A stretch of 62,948 bases of DNA, filler included, from Reticulomyxa filosa (lineage: Eukaryota; Protista; Foraminifera), in NCBI GenBank assembly GCA_000512085.1. It is 21 parts of 21 records of this genome, joined end to end, with 100 filler letters (N's around TTAATTAATTAA, not from the genome) between each part and the next. Parts side by side here need not be neighbours in the genome. Positions count along the whole stretch, not along the records: positions 4,486 to 12,967 come from ASPP01034780.1; 20 more parts are not named here. One strand, given 5' to 3'. The notes below the pieces were generated by a model. The model made no database searches. It worked only from the letters and a program-made list of their open reading frames with translations, and was not told the DNA's origin. Numbering within the stretch: position 1 is the first letter of the stretch; the number at the start of each line of letters is the position of its first letter. Of this stretch, positions 4,386 through 12,967 are shown piece by piece. A program made the translations under genes and the position numbers.

Positions 4386-4515
4386 NNNNNNNNNNNNNNN
4401 NNNNNNNNNNNNNNNNNNNNNNNNNNNNNTTAATTAATTAANNNNNNNNNNNNNNNNNNNNNNNNNNNNNNNNNNNNNNNNNNNNTCAAAAAGGAAAAAT
4501 TAAGGAGAAACATAC

Positions 4516-4722
4516 CTGTAACCAACAAATGCCACTCGAATTTTGACAAAAGGGTACTCAAGCAATAGTTTGGTCATAATGTCTTGGATGTCGGTCTTGA
4601 ATTGGTTTATCCACCTGGACATTGAGCCTTCACAAACAAACAGGTTCCTGAAGATAAATAACTTTCACTCGTTTCTCTTTCTTACCTGTGCAATCCATAA
4701 CAAAGCACAAATCAGCATTCAT
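4516..4722 (-). CDS. von Willebrand factor A (vWA) domain protein, N-terminal exons; VwkA-like MIDAS
   Basis: Not in ORF track. Exons 4722-4686 and 4627-4516, joined by a GT-AG intron, give MNADLCFVMDCTGSMSRWINQFKTDIQDIMTKLLLEYPFVKIRVAFVGYR with a DxTxS MIDAS motif; truncated by contig end. Confidence 0.85.
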
Positions 4723-5040
4723 TTCTGCTTTTCAATCTTTTTATAATTCGGCTGATACACGAAGTAGTTACAAAAAAAGTAAAACGGGGAAAACAAACAA
4801 CAGCAACATTTTGAATGCTTAGTAATAGTAAAACAAAGATAATTTGGATGTTGCTGATCTTTATTAATGTTTATTTTGTTCAAAGAAAATATCCATCACA
4901 ATTTGTTTCAAAATTATTTCACGTGAATAAAGAAGATTACATGTACATTTATAAACTCAAAAATTAAAAGTTTTACTAATTTGACTTTCCAAGTATAAAA
5001 GCCTTTCTTTGTTGCCTTAGACAGCTCATTTGTCAACATC

Positions 5041-7323
5041 ATGTCTAATGAATGGCTTGATAAAGTGATTGGGATAGATTTGGGCTTCTTTGGCTCTGCT
5101 GCTGCAGCATGTGAGCATACAATGCCCGGAGTTGTTCCCAGAGTAGATTTAATTCAACACACCGGAGGTTGTGAGGAAATGGCTCAGTACGCCAAGAGTA
5201 AAAATTTATCGGCTCTACTTTTGGAGCGCGAAACAAAGTCAGTCGTGTGTTGGGGTTATAAGGCAGAGAGCAAATATTTCCAAACAAAAGTTTCGTTTAA
5301 CAAACTATATAAACATAAAAATAAAAGAGTGGCTCTACTTTTTGTCGACACATTTCAACTATATATATAGCCAAAAGAGCGTAGCAAGTTTGCGTATTTT
5401 GCAAATTTTAAACCGGACGTATTGACCAAAGACGCTAAACTTCGATCGATGAAGATAAGGGATAGCAGTGGAACACATGAAATGCCAGTGATGGAATTGT
5501 TTGTGATGCTGCTGAATGCCATCAAAGAAACAGCATTAACACAAGTGGAAATGACTCGAAAATATATGTTTGGAGAGGCATATCGACCTCTTGATCCAAA
5601 GAAAATATTGTATGTGTTGACTGTCCCTGCGCTTTGGGATGATGAGGTTAATATTTTTTATAGAAAAAAAGTGTGTCTCTCCATTTTCTTCAGTGTTTCA
5701 TAAAACAAAACAAATAAAAATCCAACAATTAGAATACAGAAACAATGAGAGAATGTGGACAAAAGTGTGGAATGCATAATATTGAAATATGTTTTGAGCC
5801 CATTGCAGCAGCATTTGCCGTGGTCAGTCACAGTCATAGCAAAGAGAGAGATGATACAAAAAGACTTCAATTCTTTGAAGAGTTGAGTTACTTTTTGCTT
5901 ATTTTTTTTTATGGCTCCAAAATAAATAAAATAAATAAATGAATGAAAATAGTGATCAAGTGGTATTATTGGATATGGGTGGAGGTACAATTGATGCTGC
6001 TTGTTTAAAGTTTTTGGAAGATGGAATAATGTCTGAAACTCATCGTCGAGATGGATTGAAAATTGGAGGTATAGCAGTAGATCAAGAATTTGAGGCTTTG
6101 CTTTCAGACATTTTTGGAGATAGTGTCATTCATGATTTTCAAGAAAAGTTTCGATTAAACAAAAATTGTACTTTTTTTATTTTATTTAAACATCAAAAAT
6201 AAATAAAACAAAGTGATCCGCAAGCATGGCTCCAACAAAGAAATGAATTTTGGCGTGCAAAGAACACGCTCCGTGACAAGAGGTCGTGGAATGTGAGAGT
6301 GGTGACGAAATTCAAAAGTCACTTAAAGTCGACCATTGGAAGCATTGATGCGGTTGAAGAAAAATTTCGAACATATTCCAAGATTAATGATAAACCAAAG
6401 TCAGGAGAAAAAAACAAATATTATACACACTCCAGCTTTTTTTGTTGTTGTGTTTTTTTTAATTAGTCAACTAAAACTGGATGGAAGTACATTGGAGTTG
6501 TCTTATGAAACGTGGTTATTTCTGCATAAACGAGTATTAGACAGCATTTGTGATTTTGTCTCAAAACTCTTGGATCATGAGCGAGTGAATCCAAGAGTAT
6601 TGATAGTAACTGGAGGTTTTTCGAATTGTCCTTACATTGTTCCAAGATTAGAAAAACTTCTCCGTGAAAGAGAAAAACCAATCAAAATTTATCAACCATC
6701 CATTCCTCATGAAACTGTTGTGTGTGGCTCTGTTCTCTGGGCCATCCACTATAAACATTTATCGACATTCAGAGCAGTTTCAACATTGGGATGGTGTGTC
6801 GACAAGATATGGTATCCTGGAGATCCTGATGATGATCATAAAGTTAGTACTTCTGAGTCACCAACCGGATATATTCGTAAAAGATTGTTTAACACAATTA
6901 TTCGACGAGATGATAAGTTTGAAAATGGAGTAGTTGAGTGAAATATTATTGAACAATTGTTGAATACCTTGTAAACTAAACTAAAAAAACAAATAAATCA
7001 ATTAATAGGAGCACAGAGAGGAATATATCATTCCACGGTATCAAAAGTCAGTAGAATTTGCATTATATAAATCTGAACATAAATATGGAGTACAATATTG
7101 TGACGACAAAAGCAAATGCCAATTACTCAAAAAATTTGAAATGTATTTTGAGAACCCCTTTTCTGAACAAGTCACTTTCGAAATCGCGATCATTTTGAAA
7201 AATGATCGAGTTCAATTGTCGTATAGACATCCCGATACAGATCACCGTGGGTTTGTTCAAGTTAGATTTGAAGACGGAAATGTGGAGGACGTTGTCAAAA
7301 TCGGTACTGAGTTTGAGAAATGA
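5041..7323 (+). CDS. Atypical Hsp70, HSPA12-like, 7 exons
   Basis: Splices in frame through six GT-AG introns. Motifs: VIGIDLG, FANFK, YVLTVPALWDD, FEPIAAA, LLDMGGGTID, VTGGFSNCPY, and an HSPA12-type C-terminus (FNTIIRRDD..EFALYKSE); no canonical substrate-binding lid or EEVD. Confidence 0.85.
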
Positions 7324-7664
7324 AAACAAAGTGTTTGAAATGAAAAGCGACGAAAAAAAACATCTTGCTTGACAAAAGATTATCAATGACATTTTTGACT
7401 TTTGTAAACGATCAATTCTTTCATAAGAAAATCAAAAGCTGAATATAAAAATATGTTAGTGTTTTTAATTGATAGTGTACGATCAAGAAAAAAAGATCAC
7501 ATTGAAGAAATATTGCAAACAGTATAAGAGAATTTCATAATATAAAAAAATCAACTTCACATATTCTCCAGGAATTAAAATTCTCATTTTACAAAAAAAT
7601 AGTTTCAGAAATGATTTAAATTAATTTGTTAGAGAAATATAACAACGTAGTTGTAGGTTTGATA

Positions 7665-8712
7665 TTACTTTTGCAAAATATTATTTTCGTTTAATACAAT
7701 AACATCGAAGCTCGTGTAACAGGCAGTAATAGGGATATGTAACAACTCATTAGTGTCGCGTCGGAATAAAGATGGCCAAATGAAATAGCCGATACTGTTA
7801 CAACCATTGTCGTTCCCTAAAAATTTTTTTGCAATTTTAATATTTTTAGATTGAATTTCACGATTTAATTGAAGATTTGAAGCAAATGTCAACGGATAAG
7901 GTCTTAAAGAAGGTCTTGATAACACACAGCTCCACATGCTTTGTAAACATGATTCAATCAATTCATTTTTTTTACTATTCATTTTACTATAAGTTGAACC
8001 AAATAAATGTCCAAAATGTTGATTTTCTTTAATAAGCAGTTCTCTCAGATTCGAATTAATGAATTGTTCTCCTTTTTGATGTAATTGTGTGAATGAAGAA
8101 TTGAATTGTTCTTGAAAAATGGTTTGAAAATATCTTTGTGCAGTTTCTTTATTTATTCCAAATAGTGTTTGCAAATATTGTAATTGATCTTCCCAATACT
8201 GATTTACAAATTGATAAGATAATAACAATATTGAGAATGATATACAATGCGCAAATCTTGCCAAAAATGACATTGCATACTTTTTTTGGATCTTTTCATT
8301 ATCTTCTAATTGCATAATGATTTCACTTGTCAAATTTAATCGATAATTGTCACTTATTTCTTCATAAGTTGTCACAATCTTATTCATTGATGGAAATTCA
8401 CTTTCAATTCCGATTCCGACTGTCAAAACGCAAATTCTTTCTCTCAGTTCTTTCATTTCACTGAACAATTGTGCATTTGTTCAATTATTTGTGTCCACAC
8501 AGCAATATAGTTTTTTTTATTCAATAATTTATGTGGTAAATGTATAAAAATTTTCGAACATTTGGCTAATGCTAACAAAGTTAAAGTCAGAGGCGGTTAT
8601 AACTAGTAAACTGTTTAAGTGAATTGCAGACTTCAATTTCCTCAAACATGGCTGACTTTTCAGCATTTAATGAATCGATTTTGTCTTTTTGGTCTTTAGT
8701 TTCTTGTGCAAA
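7665..8712 (-). CDS. Coiled-coil protein with MIEAP/SPATA18-like C-terminal domain; 5' end missing
   Basis: LRERICVLTVG..SMNKIVTTYEEISDNYRL, LIESCLQSMWSCVLSRPSL and IGYFIWPSL resemble MIEAP domain motifs (helix-W-x-P; YxVWPAL); a short coiled-coil exon lies upstream (QETKDQKDKIDSLNAEK). Confidence 0.65.
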
Positions 8713-10065
8713 TTTTTGGAAAAAAATGAAAAACAAAAGAAGTGCCTGGACATTTCGAATAAACAATTCAATCAGATTAGAGATTTGAACGCAGAAAATG
8801 GAAAACAAATGAACAGGTTGAGAGATGAAAACTATAAACAAACAAAACAAATAGATGGAATGAAGGAAGAACATAAAAAACAAAAGAAACAAGTGGACAG
8901 TTTGAAAGATGAAAACAATCAGCAAGTGGAACAAATCAAAAATTTGAAGAAAGAGAACGAGAAACATATAAATGAAAGTAATGTTTTGAGAGAAGAGATT
9001 GAACAATATTTGAATCAAATTGACAATTTCAAAGATGAAAACAAGAAACAAGTAAAACAAATGGATGAAATGGAGGAATTACATAAAATACAAAAGAAAG
9101 AATTGGATGAAATGGAGGAATTACATAAAATACAAAAGAAACAATTGGATCAAATCAAGTCAGAAGTTACAGCACAAAATTTGTCAGTGAAAGAGCTAAA
9201 CAAACTTTTATCAGATCCAAAAGTTGAGTACGGCTACTTTTTACAAACAGAAACTTCCATTATTCAAATAATTAACAAAAAATGAAATAGATTCGGTGGA
9301 TGAAAAACGACAAATTGGGTATAATAGAACCGGCTCTTGTTATTGCAAATCTCAATGATGCACAAGCTTTCCAAACACCCCAAAGATGTTTTCATGTTTT
9401 GAATTCTGATTTGTCTAACCAACTTGTGGATGTTGAGGTAATTTATCTTTATATTTTTGTATCTTTTTTGAAAAGCATCTACTCCATTTGCTATTCAAAT
9501 ATTTAGATAAATAGCTCTCCCAAAGTGTTGAAAGAGATGATCCAATCTTTGATGTCGTATTGTGCCAAATCTATGTCCTCTCAAAGTGTTTAGCTTCTTT
9601 TGTCCCTTAAAAAAAAATGACTATTTTGTTAAAATTGATATCCAAAAAAAAAGTTGTTAATTGGGGCTTTGGTATCTTACGAAATTGAAGAAATTGGATG
9701 GCTTTCAGCATCAAAATATACAAGATATGCCCGTGTGGAGAAATGTTTCGTAAATGGAGAAAACCTTCTGGTAGAACTAAGCAACGGTTATAAGGGCACA
9801 TGGACTGCTTTCAGAGTTTTGTTTGTACTTTTTTGATTTTTTGTTTTAATATAAAATACAAGCAATAAACTTGGTAGGTAGTACCAGAACATTTGGCCAC
9901 TCTAATTCCTCAAGTTATTCAACAATATTCTGTGGAGGGTTCTTTTTCACACTTGGTTAATATTATATTGTTGTTTGGGCACAAATAATATAAAATAAAT
10001 GAAATTGTCCAGTGAAATACAAAATCTGAGAGAAAGAATTCGTGTTTTGACAGCCGGAGTAGGAG
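8713..10065 (+). pseudogene. Truncated paralog: coiled coil, unnamed four-exon domain, start of MIEAP-like domain
   Basis: Heptad-rich exon 8713-9222, exons at about 9291-9938, and a last exon LSSEIQNLRERIRVLTAGVG homologous at DNA level to 8400-8500 on the minus strand; no clear start, stops abruptly. Confidence 0.6.
9061..9144 (+). repeat. 42-bp in-frame tandem duplication (two heptads)
   Basis: TGGATGAAATGGAGGAATTACATAAAATACAAAAGAAA occurs twice with 42-nt period, encoding DEMEELHKIQKK twice. Confidence 0.9.
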
Positions 10066-10829
10066 GGATCAGAAATCGAACCAAAATTAATGTATTTAAC
10101 AGAAATTTTTTTTCCAAAGGAAATGATGCCAAACAATGGTTCAGACAACCCGACAATCAAAAGGAAATATTTTTTATGTTTGGTCTGGTGTTGATGCTTT
10201 TTGGTAACAATTAGGCATTTGTCTGGCCTGTTACGTATTGCTACAATTAAAATTTTTTAAAAACATATAAAACTTCTTGAATATCACAACTGAATTTCAC
10301 TCCTGCTTCTGTTGAATTTAAACAGTTTATCTTTATTCATTAACACTTCAAATCAATTTTATTTTAAGCCATTTGAAAAGAGTAATTAATGATACAAATC
10401 AAATATTCGTTCTTTTTTGCTGGCTTTAAAATTCTGATATTGTTGATGTATATGTATTGTATTGATTGAAATGATTTTTCAAGGCTTTCCACATCTATAA
10501 CGTTGAATATATTTCAAAGTCAATCAGTTTCACATTGATCAACACTAGGCCAGCAACGCACTCTATTTTTTATTTCATGTAACGATAGCGCTTCTTAATA
10601 TTTCGTTTATGTGTTATTTCAACACTTGTTTCAACGTATATAAAAAATGACGAAAAGTTTATTTTGTTCTTTCAAGTTCTAGTGAATGTCTTAGTGCTGC
10701 CCTTTTTGCACACTAACTTGTGAAAAAGAGGAGTTTAGAGCTAAAAGAAAGAAAGATCAACCAATATGAGGTATCCCTTGTTTCTTACTATATAATATGC
10801 AGTACTTTTTTTTGTTATTTGATTTGTTG

Positions 10830-12967
10830 GAAACGTGACGTACAAAACAGTGAAGATTATCCAAACTTTCAAACTTGTGAAGACAAAAGCCTTGAGTTCC
10901 AAAGCAAAAACGCATGGGAGTTTCGCTTGAATACACGAGGGTTTTGTGATTACCTTGGATCCTTTTTTTGTGTTGACCACTTGTCTATCCTTCGATTATT
11001 GCAATTTGTGTCATCAATCCCCAGTTATTCTTTTAATAACAGGAACAATGAAGTCATCCCTAATTACAAAGTTGATAATGGCTCGAGGAATACTGAAAAT
11101 AATGTTGGTGGTACAAAAAAATCAATTGGAATGGACCAAAGCATGTATTTAGAAGAAAAATCAGACAAGGTAAGTCAAATTTTGTATTTTCATTATTATT
11201 GACTCCTTTCTTTTGTTTACATAAGGATGTGCACACATTTGCAAGCACAAGATCGAGAGATGGGAACAAATAGCATCGAATAAAGGATTGGAAGAAAAAA
11301 GAGCAGATCATATGCAAGTTAAGTGTAAAAGCATTTTTTACTTTGATTGTATCCCTCTTAATCAAAGCCCCGCACTTTTGCACAGATTAGTATTGGAGCC
11401 TCTACGACAACTAAAAGCAAACTAAATGAAAACATTGTTTGGAAACAAGTTTTGTTCACTTTATGTTTTACCAATGTTATGTCACATTTGATAATTTATT
11501 GATTTACCATTTTTGTGTTTTCATTTGGGATAACAAATTGCAAAAAAAAGTTTCGTTGGTACAAGCAAGATGGCAGTGAGCAAAAAGAGCTCGTGTATAT
11601 TGAACAAGAAAATCCACGTGTGGATAGTAAACAAATTAACGGTGGATTTATAGTGCAAACAATGGAACGAAAATTTCTATATATCCCTCCTGGTGACAAA
11701 CGGATGGCGCAAATAGTTTACTACACTCCGTTTTTGAAAAATTTAGGCTGTTTTCATAACAAATAAAACATATAGACCCATGATCCAAACAATGAAGACA
11801 TGACTGCCCTTTATAATTTATGGGCGAAGCAAATGGAATTTGAAGCAGTTACACGCACTTTATTTTTTCCTTCTTTCAATGCCCTTTTTCCACTTTTCTC
11901 AAAGCTAAAAAAAATAATGAATGTGATACAGTTGACCGGAAGTAAAAAGTATGTTTATTACTATGACAGATATCTTCCAGGCAAAGTTGCCTCCAAAATT
12001 GCTCTTATAAAAGAATTGCTCGTGATGGAAAAAAGAATTTACGCTTGGGCAGGTGATAAATGTGCCTTATTGATAACACAAGACGACAAGGTATTTCTCT
12101 CTTTTTATTTTCTCAAGCATAAATGACCAAATAACAACAAAAAAAAGGTACCACCATTTGGCCGTGTGACCAGTTGGATTAATTTAGTTAAGCCAAAGTA
12201 AAAGAAACTTTTTTGTAGTTGTAATTATCACACGGGGGCTATTATCCACAAAAAAAAACATGAACAGACTCAATTACGAAGAAATGAAATATATCAGTTG
12301 AAACTGAATTGATATTGTTTATTTGTAAAAAATAAGGAAGTTGTAAGTAATGGAGCAAACATTAAAAATAAAAAAACAACAGAGAACTGCAAAATAAGAA
12401 TATACGATTGAACCAGCAAATCGAGGAATGGTCAAAATATTGTCAAACAGTGGCCGATGATAAATTACATTGCGAAAACAAAATGGCAGATCTCGAAGAA
12501 CAATTGAACAAAGCCAAGGGGAGAATAACAGAATATAAAACTCAACATAATGATTTAACAGTAAAATTGAACAGCAGTGAACAGGAAATACGTCCTTTAA
12601 AGGAACAGAACAAACAACAAATGCAGCGAATTTATTGTTTGATAAAAGAAGGTGACGAACAAATAGACAAAAACAGGCAACAAAGGGAACAAATCGGCAC
12701 TTTGGAAAACGAAAAGCAGATGCTGCAAGTACAGAATCGAAGTCTTATATTTGAAAATGGGAGACAAACAAAAGAATTACACGAACATCGAAATAAAATC
12801 ACACAATTGGAGTCTAATTATAAACTACTGAAGACTCAATTTGATGATACCAATACACAAAACAAAAAATATAAAAATATATTACATACCTTTAATTCTG
12901 AAAAAGTCATATTGGACGACGAGTTGGAAAGATACAAGCACCAATCCAATGAATTGAAAAAGTTGAA
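10830..12967 (+). CDS. Multi-exon protein: unnamed globular domain plus long coiled coil (3' end truncated)
   Basis: Series of exons bounded by GT/AG; the four-exon domain at 11550-12198 resembles 9291-9938; heptad-rich exon 12383-12967. Start not located. Confidence 0.6.

Follow-up and report, generated by a model that had tools for sequence, protein, structure and literature searches.

As far as we are aware, no co-factors or clients have been defined for HSPA12 proteins, which are atypical members of the Hsp70 family, and how the MIEAP domain works at the molecular level is poorly understood. Conserved gene neighbourhoods are rare in eukaryotes. Remodelling ATPases that are encoded beside, or fused with, a vWA domain of the metal ion-dependent adhesion site (MIDAS) type, which docks the target, make up the MoxR-vWA couples (RavA-ViaA, CbbQ-CbbO) and Rea1/midasin. 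vWA-NTPase conflict systems have also been described (PMC7159879). The window analysed here is a stretch of 62,948 nucleotides from the freshwater foraminifer Reticulomyxa filosa, in which positions 4486 to 12967 are one complete 8,482-bp contig, C34780 (ASPP01034780.1), of an assembly of 101.9 Mb in 50,809 contigs. On this contig the 5' end of a predicted vWA-HSPA12 fusion gene ('Hsp70B') lies opposite another HSPA12-like gene ('Hsp70A') in head-to-head orientation, next to genes of the MIEAP family. We found that this arrangement recurs in the genome and, in part, in another organism, and the explanation that we favour as a whole, with modest confidence, is that C34780 carries a single copy of a lineage-amplified R. 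filosa gene cassette whose three families, vWA, Hsp70 and MIEAP, act together in ATPase-driven remodelling.

Several described systems resemble parts of this cassette. Like metazoan HSPA12A/HSPA12B and the bivalve HSPA12 expansions, the R. filosa proteins are atypical Hsp70/actin-fold ATPases of ~600 amino acids with phosphate-1, phosphate-2 and adenosine motifs, they may lack a canonical substrate-binding domain, they occur as many paralogs, and the nearest ESM Atlas clusters of Hsp70B are named HSPA12A-like; unlike them, one paralog type in R. filosa carries an N-terminal vWA fusion, and the genes form a fixed divergent pair beside MIEAP genes. In the literature searched, no vWA or MIEAP-type partners of animal HSPA12 are described. 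MIEAP/SPATA18 (PF16026) shares with the R. filosa coiled-coil genes a coiled coil at the N-terminus and, after it, a C-terminal domain of ~200-270 amino acids, as well as feature and structure similarity, whereas the R. filosa branch falls below the Pfam cut-off (18 vs 27 bits), has extra parts (G3, G4 or WD40) and is genomically tied to Hsp70-type ATPases; none of the present observations concerns mitochondria. The AAA+/vWA couples are alike in that a nucleotide-driven ATPase is encoded beside or fused with a MIDAS-type vWA domain, but the ATPase of R. filosa is of the Hsp70/actin fold, is eukaryotic with introns, and has MIEAP coiled-coil partners. In DnaK-GrpE, and in E. coli yegD with yegLKI, an Hsp70-family ATPase gene also lies beside a gene for a helical protein or a vWA domain; GrpE sequence or fold similarity was, however, not found in the R. 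filosa MIEAP-like protein. Type III CoCoNuT systems (PMC11090510) are built around a McrBC GTPase and nucleases that are absent from the R. filosa cassette, and no homology was shown other than in the folds that they have in common. Nothing that links HSPA12 with MIEAP or vWA, or that concerns these families in Reticulomyxa, was found in the literature searched, and the gene association, an ATPase-vWA couple that here has an Hsp70 fold and MIEAP partners, is apparently undescribed.

The gene order on C34780 is a vWA gene (minus strand), Hsp70A (plus), a MIEAP-like gene (minus) and two coiled-coil open reading frames (ORFs; plus). An earlier note on this DNA had set out the same layout, and its distances and placing of the features held: the vWA and Hsp70A start codons are head-to-head with 318 bp between them, and the stop codons of Hsp70A and the MIEAP-like gene are tail-to-tail across a gap of 341 bp. 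The contig has a GC content of ~31%, and the introns of its genes are short (~65-90 bp) and of the GT-AG type. On the minus strand, the vWA gene starts with an ATG at 4720-4722 and continues through exon 1 (4686-4722) and exon 2 (4516-4627) until the contig end at 4486 cuts it. Together, these two exons encode MNADLCFVMDCTG followed by SMSRWINQFKTD, with SMSRWINQ directly after MNADLCFVMDCTG, and give a MIDAS-type DxTxS start. Just the first 49 residues are encoded in this copy, with the motif DCTGS, and the remainder lies off the contig. Exon 2 is 53-74% identical to the vWA exons that stand head-to-head with Hsp70A at six paralogous loci, and the vWA exons of paralogs match Pfam VWA_4 (PF25106) with E = 4e-4. 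The full-length relatives P0028, P0033 and P0036 score over the VWA_4 cut-off (35-45 bits) and continue into an HSPA12-like domain. The motif in C34780, taken with VWA_4 in its relatives, bears out a vWA fold with a MIDAS motif at its first strand, in agreement with the vWA gene named in the earlier note. The vWA start is thus present, but it does not appear to be a gene of its own, as that note had it: because vWA exons at paralogous loci continue into an Hsp70 domain, the C34780 vWA gene reads as the 5' end of a vWA-HSPA12 fusion, that is, of a second Hsp70. At the loci L011 and L013 the vWA exons, interrupted by short introns, extend into another Hsp70-type ATPase that starts with FKAFAGIDFGTDGTGFAY, and the NCBI models RFI_31704 (P0017) and RFI_07581 (P0059) have vWA and Hsp70 sequence joined. 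The Atlas neighbours of Hsp70B (P0017) are clusters named 'heat shock 70 kDa protein 12A-like', with feature scores of 0.97-0.98.

Hsp70A starts with the ATG at 5041, ends with the stop codon at 7321-7323, and is predicted to have exons at 5041-5289, 5371-5646, 5733-5881, 5953-6147, 6214-6399, 6467-6932 and 7009-7323 (stop included). Every intron is GT-AG, and the frame closes exactly over the 611 codons. Searches were run with each exon separately. The seven exons were colinear with the vWA-HSPA12 profile (exon 6, 7e-17; exon 4, 2e-15; exon 1, 2e-6), and the motifs GIDLGFFGS, LLDMGGGTID, FEPIAAA and VTGGFSNCP were present, which supports the HSPA12-like assignment made before and gives Hsp70A the phosphate-1, phosphate-2, connect and adenosine motifs of an actin/Hsp70-fold nucleotide-binding domain. 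In phosphate-1, F-F or S-F stands in place of the T-T of canonical Hsp70. Exon 4 matched Pfam HSP70 weakly (E = 0.004), none of the exons matched the C-terminal half of Pfam HSP70, and the Pfam HSP70 matches of the relatives end at about profile position 440 of 599. Greater closeness to HSPA12 than to DnaK was seen directly for type B (P0017) only, type A having been compared exon by exon with the relatives of P0017. The closest Hsp70A paralog, on C17112 (L002, 3148-3393 and 2268-2480; 86% DNA identity), has GIYLG for GIDLG, with loss of the catalytic Asp, and MGRSTID for MGGGTID; this copy may be inactive or decaying.

The third family of the cassette is represented by the minus-strand ORF at 7668-8480, with its stop codon at 7665-7667, which from the ATG at 8454-8456 gives a 263-amino-acid ORF (P0001). 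Against Pfam MIEAP (PF16026) this ORF and P0003 scored 18.1 bits (E = 0.003), below the gathering cut-off of 27 bits. Homology to MIEAP was nevertheless reached by routes other than the Pfam score: 23 of 30 feature matches in the ESM Atlas were MIEAP clusters (score 0.91, 182 shared features), the Atlas structure comparison gave a template modelling (TM) score of 0.66 to a MIEAP cluster, and two loci, C3148 and C39550, match both the C34780 ORF and, over the cut-off, Pfam MIEAP, which makes a transitive link. On the grounds of these Atlas neighbours, the TM score and the transitive loci, the ORF is treated as a divergent MIEAP-like branch, without counting as a family member under Pfam's rule, so that the MIEAP-like identity proposed earlier holds for the branch and fails at the Pfam threshold. 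The AlphaFold model of the domain was poor (mean predicted local distance difference test score, pLDDT, of 56). At least 30 paralogous loci of this ORF are present in R. filosa, and 20 other loci pass the Pfam MIEAP cut-off. The latter, at least 20 in number (e.g. C14769:2943-3152 and C36714:356-613), make up a separate, more canonical family. Paralogs of the C34780 type have the architecture coiled coil-G3-MIEAP, sometimes with a WD40 tail, or G4-coiled coil-MIEAP, with the MIEAP domain C-terminal; a coiled coil stands N-terminal to the MIEAP domain in P0177, P0178, P0005 and the protein of the environmental contig L019, described below.

The genes recur together within the genome. At least 11 paralogous Hsp70A loci are present, besides fragments, and vWA of the C34780 type is found on 15 contigs, C34780 included. 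At all 11 assessable loci the vWA exons were head-to-head with Hsp70A, 7 of these pairs having been inspected at sequence level and 4 by coordinates only; the four unpaired vWA loci (C6532, C35994, C25423 and C5228) lie at contig starts or are placed by coordinates only. Six contigs have MIEAP genes tail-to-tail with Hsp70A (C34780, C45889, C23970, C5996, C9397 and C21855), and six have them co-directionally downstream of Hsp70B (C23970, C5996, C28159, C22871, C3354 and C37934). Since MIEAP genes flank Hsp70A in the one orientation and Hsp70B in the other, the families are kept adjacent in several (at least three) different arrangements. With ~15 vWA and 22 Hsp70A loci in 101.9 Mb, ~0.007 vWA/Hsp70A pairs are expected within 1 kb, and at least 11 were seen; for MIEAP/Hsp70 pairs the base-pair odds give ~0.2, and at least 10 were seen. 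The adjacency is far beyond chance, although the pair odds overstate independence because the copies are paralogous blocks. The ratio of nonsynonymous to synonymous divergence (dN/dS) was 0.15-0.39 for Hsp70A, 0.27-0.57 for MIEAP and 0.11-0.21 for Hsp70B, with synonymous divergence (dS) up to >1; purifying selection acts on all three families, and the adjacency persists across dS values of 0.5 to >1.

The spacer between the two ATPase genes is also maintained. It is short, 318 to ~475 bp, at each of the 7 loci whose sequence was inspected, and the 7 paralogous spacers, when aligned (alignment A4), had a mean identity of 63%. A block, TAATTTG..TTTTTCAAGTGTAAAAG, at 4975-5010, ~40-70 bp before the Hsp70A start codon, is common to most of the 7 and may be a core promoter element. 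A shared bidirectional promoter had been proposed for this spacer; that a short spacer is kept at 7 loci fits such a candidate promoter.

Part of the cassette was also found outside R. filosa. On L019, an environmental eukaryote contig (ENA ERZ893790) of 44% GC, vWA and Hsp70 are encoded in one uninterrupted ORF of 573 codons that is ~33% identical to the R. filosa proteins, and a 393-amino-acid coiled coil plus MIEAP-like gene lies tail-to-tail with it, ~145 bp apart. The C-terminal domain of the L019 protein aligns over nearly its full length with the R. filosa branch, with invariant W, P, YP and Y.WP.L..D, and a hidden Markov model built from R. filosa sequences alone recovered the L019 gene (E = 1.5e-7) as the sole match among 3456 decoys. 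A word-limited profile search with the MIEAP branch found no member outside R. filosa except the L019 protein. The earlier note had held that a lack of recurrent linkage at other loci or in other species would count against the module; that objection falls away, because linkage recurs within the genome (11 of 11 loci) and once in another organism (L019). Fusions of vWA with Hsp70 extend further: L101 has both in one ORF of 1006 codons, the profile built here detected a vWA-HSPA12 fusion in another foraminifer, Nonionella stella (P0047), and a vWA-Hsp70-vWA protein in the dictyostelid Synstelium (P0065), and the reversed order, Hsp70 followed by a C-terminal vWA, is present in the environmental/metagenome ORFs L086:171-2774 and L089:118-3486. 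In L089 a short vWA-like stretch is found at the N-terminus as well. Among other foraminifera, Ammonia, Bolivina, Nonionella and Sorites have transcripts of the vWA-HSPA12 or HSPA12-like kind.

As read from these gene models, the fusions tie vWA to the ATPase in the manner of a 'Rosetta stone', and both ATPases are linked to MIEAP-family proteins by their gene neighbourhood. Because the cassette recurs at least 11 times, and partly in an unrelated environmental protist, the vWA, Hsp70 and MIEAP families probably work together. The association is recurrent and well supported, and the mechanism that we infer from it is only moderately supported. In this mechanism, two HSPA12-type (actin-fold, Hsp70-like) ATPase genes that would be divergently transcribed from a short shared spacer form the core, and the Hsp70-type ATPases would most likely act on oligomers or condensates of the MIEAP coiled-coil proteins, using ATP to build them up, remodel them or take them apart. 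By analogy with the AAA+/vWA couples (MoxR-vWA, Rea1 MIDAS), the vWA/MIDAS domain would act as a docking module, while the variable G3, G4 and WD40 parts of the MIEAP proteins could serve as target or signal adaptors, and the role of the whole may lie in stress or defence. For the MIEAP protein, a role as client or scaffold is more likely than one as nucleotide-exchange factor. A complex prediction of Hsp70B (P0017 residues 79-664) with the MIEAP paralog P0002 gave a median of 0.38, with a control at 0.23, and was counted neither way. If the mechanism is right, the cassette would be an Hsp70-fold counterpart of the AAA+/vWA couples. It also brings to light a large, diversifying gene family of a foraminifer, with a possible part in stress or defence in this giant multinucleate cell. 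The neighbourhood, together with the repeated, independent vWA-HSPA12 fusions, names concrete candidate partners for expression and testing.

Several observations weigh against a working partnership of all three families. All R. filosa copies come from block duplication, and recurrence there is not independent; the Hsp70A copies on C9214 and C1054 have no MIEAP neighbour, and on C1054 this extends to the Hsp70B side; and the 20 canonical Pfam-MIEAP loci share no contig with scored HSPA12-like matches. Outside R. filosa, the MIEAP adjacency was seen in one organism only (L019); L101 shows only a coiled-coil gene that starts 50 bp divergently from vWA-Hsp70 and is truncated ahead of any MIEAP domain. 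Fusions of Hsp70 with MIEAP were not seen. A further 80 metagenomic HSPA12-like loci, mostly 25-30% identical and on contigs of mostly 2-4 kb, had no MIEAP neighbour; neither did the HSPA12-like loci of Branchiostoma and Solemya, and the two prokaryotic HSPA12-like loci recovered had no vWA or MIEAP neighbour, which lends no support to the analogy with yegD/yegLKI drawn in the earlier note. From the metagenomic, prokaryotic and animal loci together, the MIEAP link seems specific to the vWA-fused clade.

These points give most room to an explanation in which the adjacency is merely inherited, chance neighbours having been copied by segmental duplication, with vWA and Hsp70 tied to each other and MIEAP functionally unrelated. 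Every copy being a paralogous block of one genome, the generic HSPA12-like loci elsewhere being without MIEAP neighbours, and the canonical MIEAP loci of R. filosa not being near scored HSPA12-like genes all speak for it. It accounts less well for an organism with ~33% identity (L019) that keeps a MIEAP-like gene beside vWA-Hsp70, and for at least three arrangements in R. filosa that persist at dS >1 with intact and constrained ORFs, and we regard it as unlikely, though a serious possibility. A broader proposal sees HSPA12-type ATPases and MIEAP-domain proteins as functional partners of long standing across eukaryotes, with vWA as a recurrent docking add-on; by the taxa of the Atlas clusters, molluscs and Mucoromycota have expansions of both families. 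We hold this proposal to be distinctly doubtful; if it were true, the foraminiferal cassette would be the genomic footprint of that partnership, animal HSPA12A/B would act on MIEAP/SPATA18 assemblies, and both families would gain a partner and a testable biochemical role.

The repeats could also stem from a selfish or mobile element, or from a fragmented assembly with haplotigs or chimeric contigs. The cassette is multi-copy and rearranged, with an inversion in C34780 itself, the assembly is in 50,809 contigs, and some copies, at dS ~0.1, are possibly alleles. However, the GC content is host-like, the introns are short, the deep copies (dS 0.5 to >1) have dN/dS well below 1, and one cassette edge, on C9214, abuts an ordinary Ada2-like gene. 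A mobile element was rejected because no transposase, reverse-transcriptase or integrase ORF was found in ten cassette loci, and we consider this explanation, artefact included, improbable. The earlier note proposed that the MIEAP-like coiled-coil proteins serve the atypical Hsp70 as GrpE-like nucleotide-exchange factors. This is highly improbable, for although long N-terminal helices are found in both, the gene adjoins an Hsp70 and one Atlas structural row was a GrpE cluster, that row had a TM score of just 0.33 (vs 0.66 for MIEAP), Pfam GrpE gave no match, the GrpE sequence and fold (long helix pair, four-helix bundle, beta domain) were not found, and a fold search of 48,161 PDB representatives with the low-confidence model returned generic helical matches (Z ≤ 6.2) with no GrpE or BAG among them.

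Returning to the amplified cassette as the favoured explanation, the features assigned on C34780 are collected in Table 1.

Table 1. Features assigned on contig C34780, in positions of the window
Feature	Position	Strand	Basis
Predicted 5' end of vWA-HSPA12 fusion ('Hsp70B')	4486..4722	-	Sequence reading and paralog comparison
Divergent intergenic spacer, candidate bidirectional promoter	4723..5040		318 bp between the Hsp70B and Hsp70A start codons
HSPA12-like Hsp70 ('Hsp70A'), 7 predicted exons, 611 codons	5041..7323	+	GT-AG introns, profile colinearity
MIEAP-like gene	7665..8718	-	Main exon 7665-8480, upstream exon ~8611-8718
Putative detached N-terminal half of MIEAP-family gene (CC1 + G3)	8718..10214	+	blastn vs C45889
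Predicted N-terminal part of second MIEAP-family gene (G4 + CC2)	11225..12967	+	Paralogs C37934, C28159, P0177, P0178

The MIEAP-family genes on this copy appear to be broken. Upstream of the main exon of the MIEAP-like gene, the minus-strand exon matches residues 73-108 of P0176 at 89%, and further N-terminal exons are missing through rearrangement. Two plus-strand coiled-coil ORFs (8674-9282 and 12372-12965) had been taken for two more genes; they are present and MIEAP-related, but instead of separate genes they appear to be N-terminal pieces of MIEAP-family genes. In the blastn comparison with C45889, positions 8718-9931 match forward and 7655-8720 in reverse; CC1 extends to 9282 and is followed by an unassigned middle region, G3 (~9291-9985), by 80 bp left over from the start of the MIEAP exon at 9962-10040, and by a stop codon at 10212-10214. 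The opposite orientations of the matches and the exon remnant argue that the first coiled-coil gene is the N-terminal half of the same MIEAP-family gene, detached by inversion. On C45889, C28159, C22871, C5996 and C23970 the order (CC1-)G3-MIEAP is kept on one strand, CC1 itself being matched in C45889 and C23970 only. An inversion with a small duplication (7655-10040) splits the coiled coil-G3-MIEAP gene into two opposed pieces, and the cause may be a true rearrangement or a chimeric assembly. In addition, 10150-10377 matches, inverted, the sequence directly downstream of Hsp70A in the paralog on C17112, and because of this inverted match the whole 7.5-10.4 kb block is suggested to have been inserted or inverted relative to C17112.

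The second coiled-coil gene has the unassigned domain G4 (~11225-12123) and CC2 (12372-12965), and the contig end cuts it. Its parts G4_b/c/d and CC2 match C37934 and C28159, where a MIEAP exon comes next on the same strand, and in P0177 and P0178, two annotated paralogs, G4 is followed by the coiled coil and then by MIEAP. By comparison with these paralogs, the gene is expected to be the N-terminal part of a MIEAP-family gene whose MIEAP domain lies beyond the contig. G4 folded without an alignment gave a pLDDT of 37, which is unusable. Between the two coiled-coil genes, an ORF at 10717-11199 has no match elsewhere and may be non-coding.

A few further features were noted. WD40/beta-propeller repeats come after the MIEAP domain in some cassettes and lie between the MIEAP gene and the Hsp70A 3' end, as on C45889 (L009, 2900-4900), in P0176 (residues ~430-700) and in P0012; the C34780 copy, with its shorter gap, is without them. 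Among the HSPA12-like loci of other organisms, the one of Branchiostoma belcheri (L018, 10001-23936) has HSPA12-like genes in tandem with a retrotransposon ORF upstream, and its annotated 844-amino-acid model appears to hold two HSPA12-like units. In the cyanobacterium Oscillatoria sp. PCC 10802 (L103, 6384-9290), an HSPA12-like ATPase carries an N-terminal extension of 515 amino acids of unassigned nature. Inside the first coiled coil of C34780, a 42-bp unit (DEMEELHKIQKKEL / DEMEELHKIQKKQL) is duplicated in tandem, in perfect frame, at positions 9061-9144.

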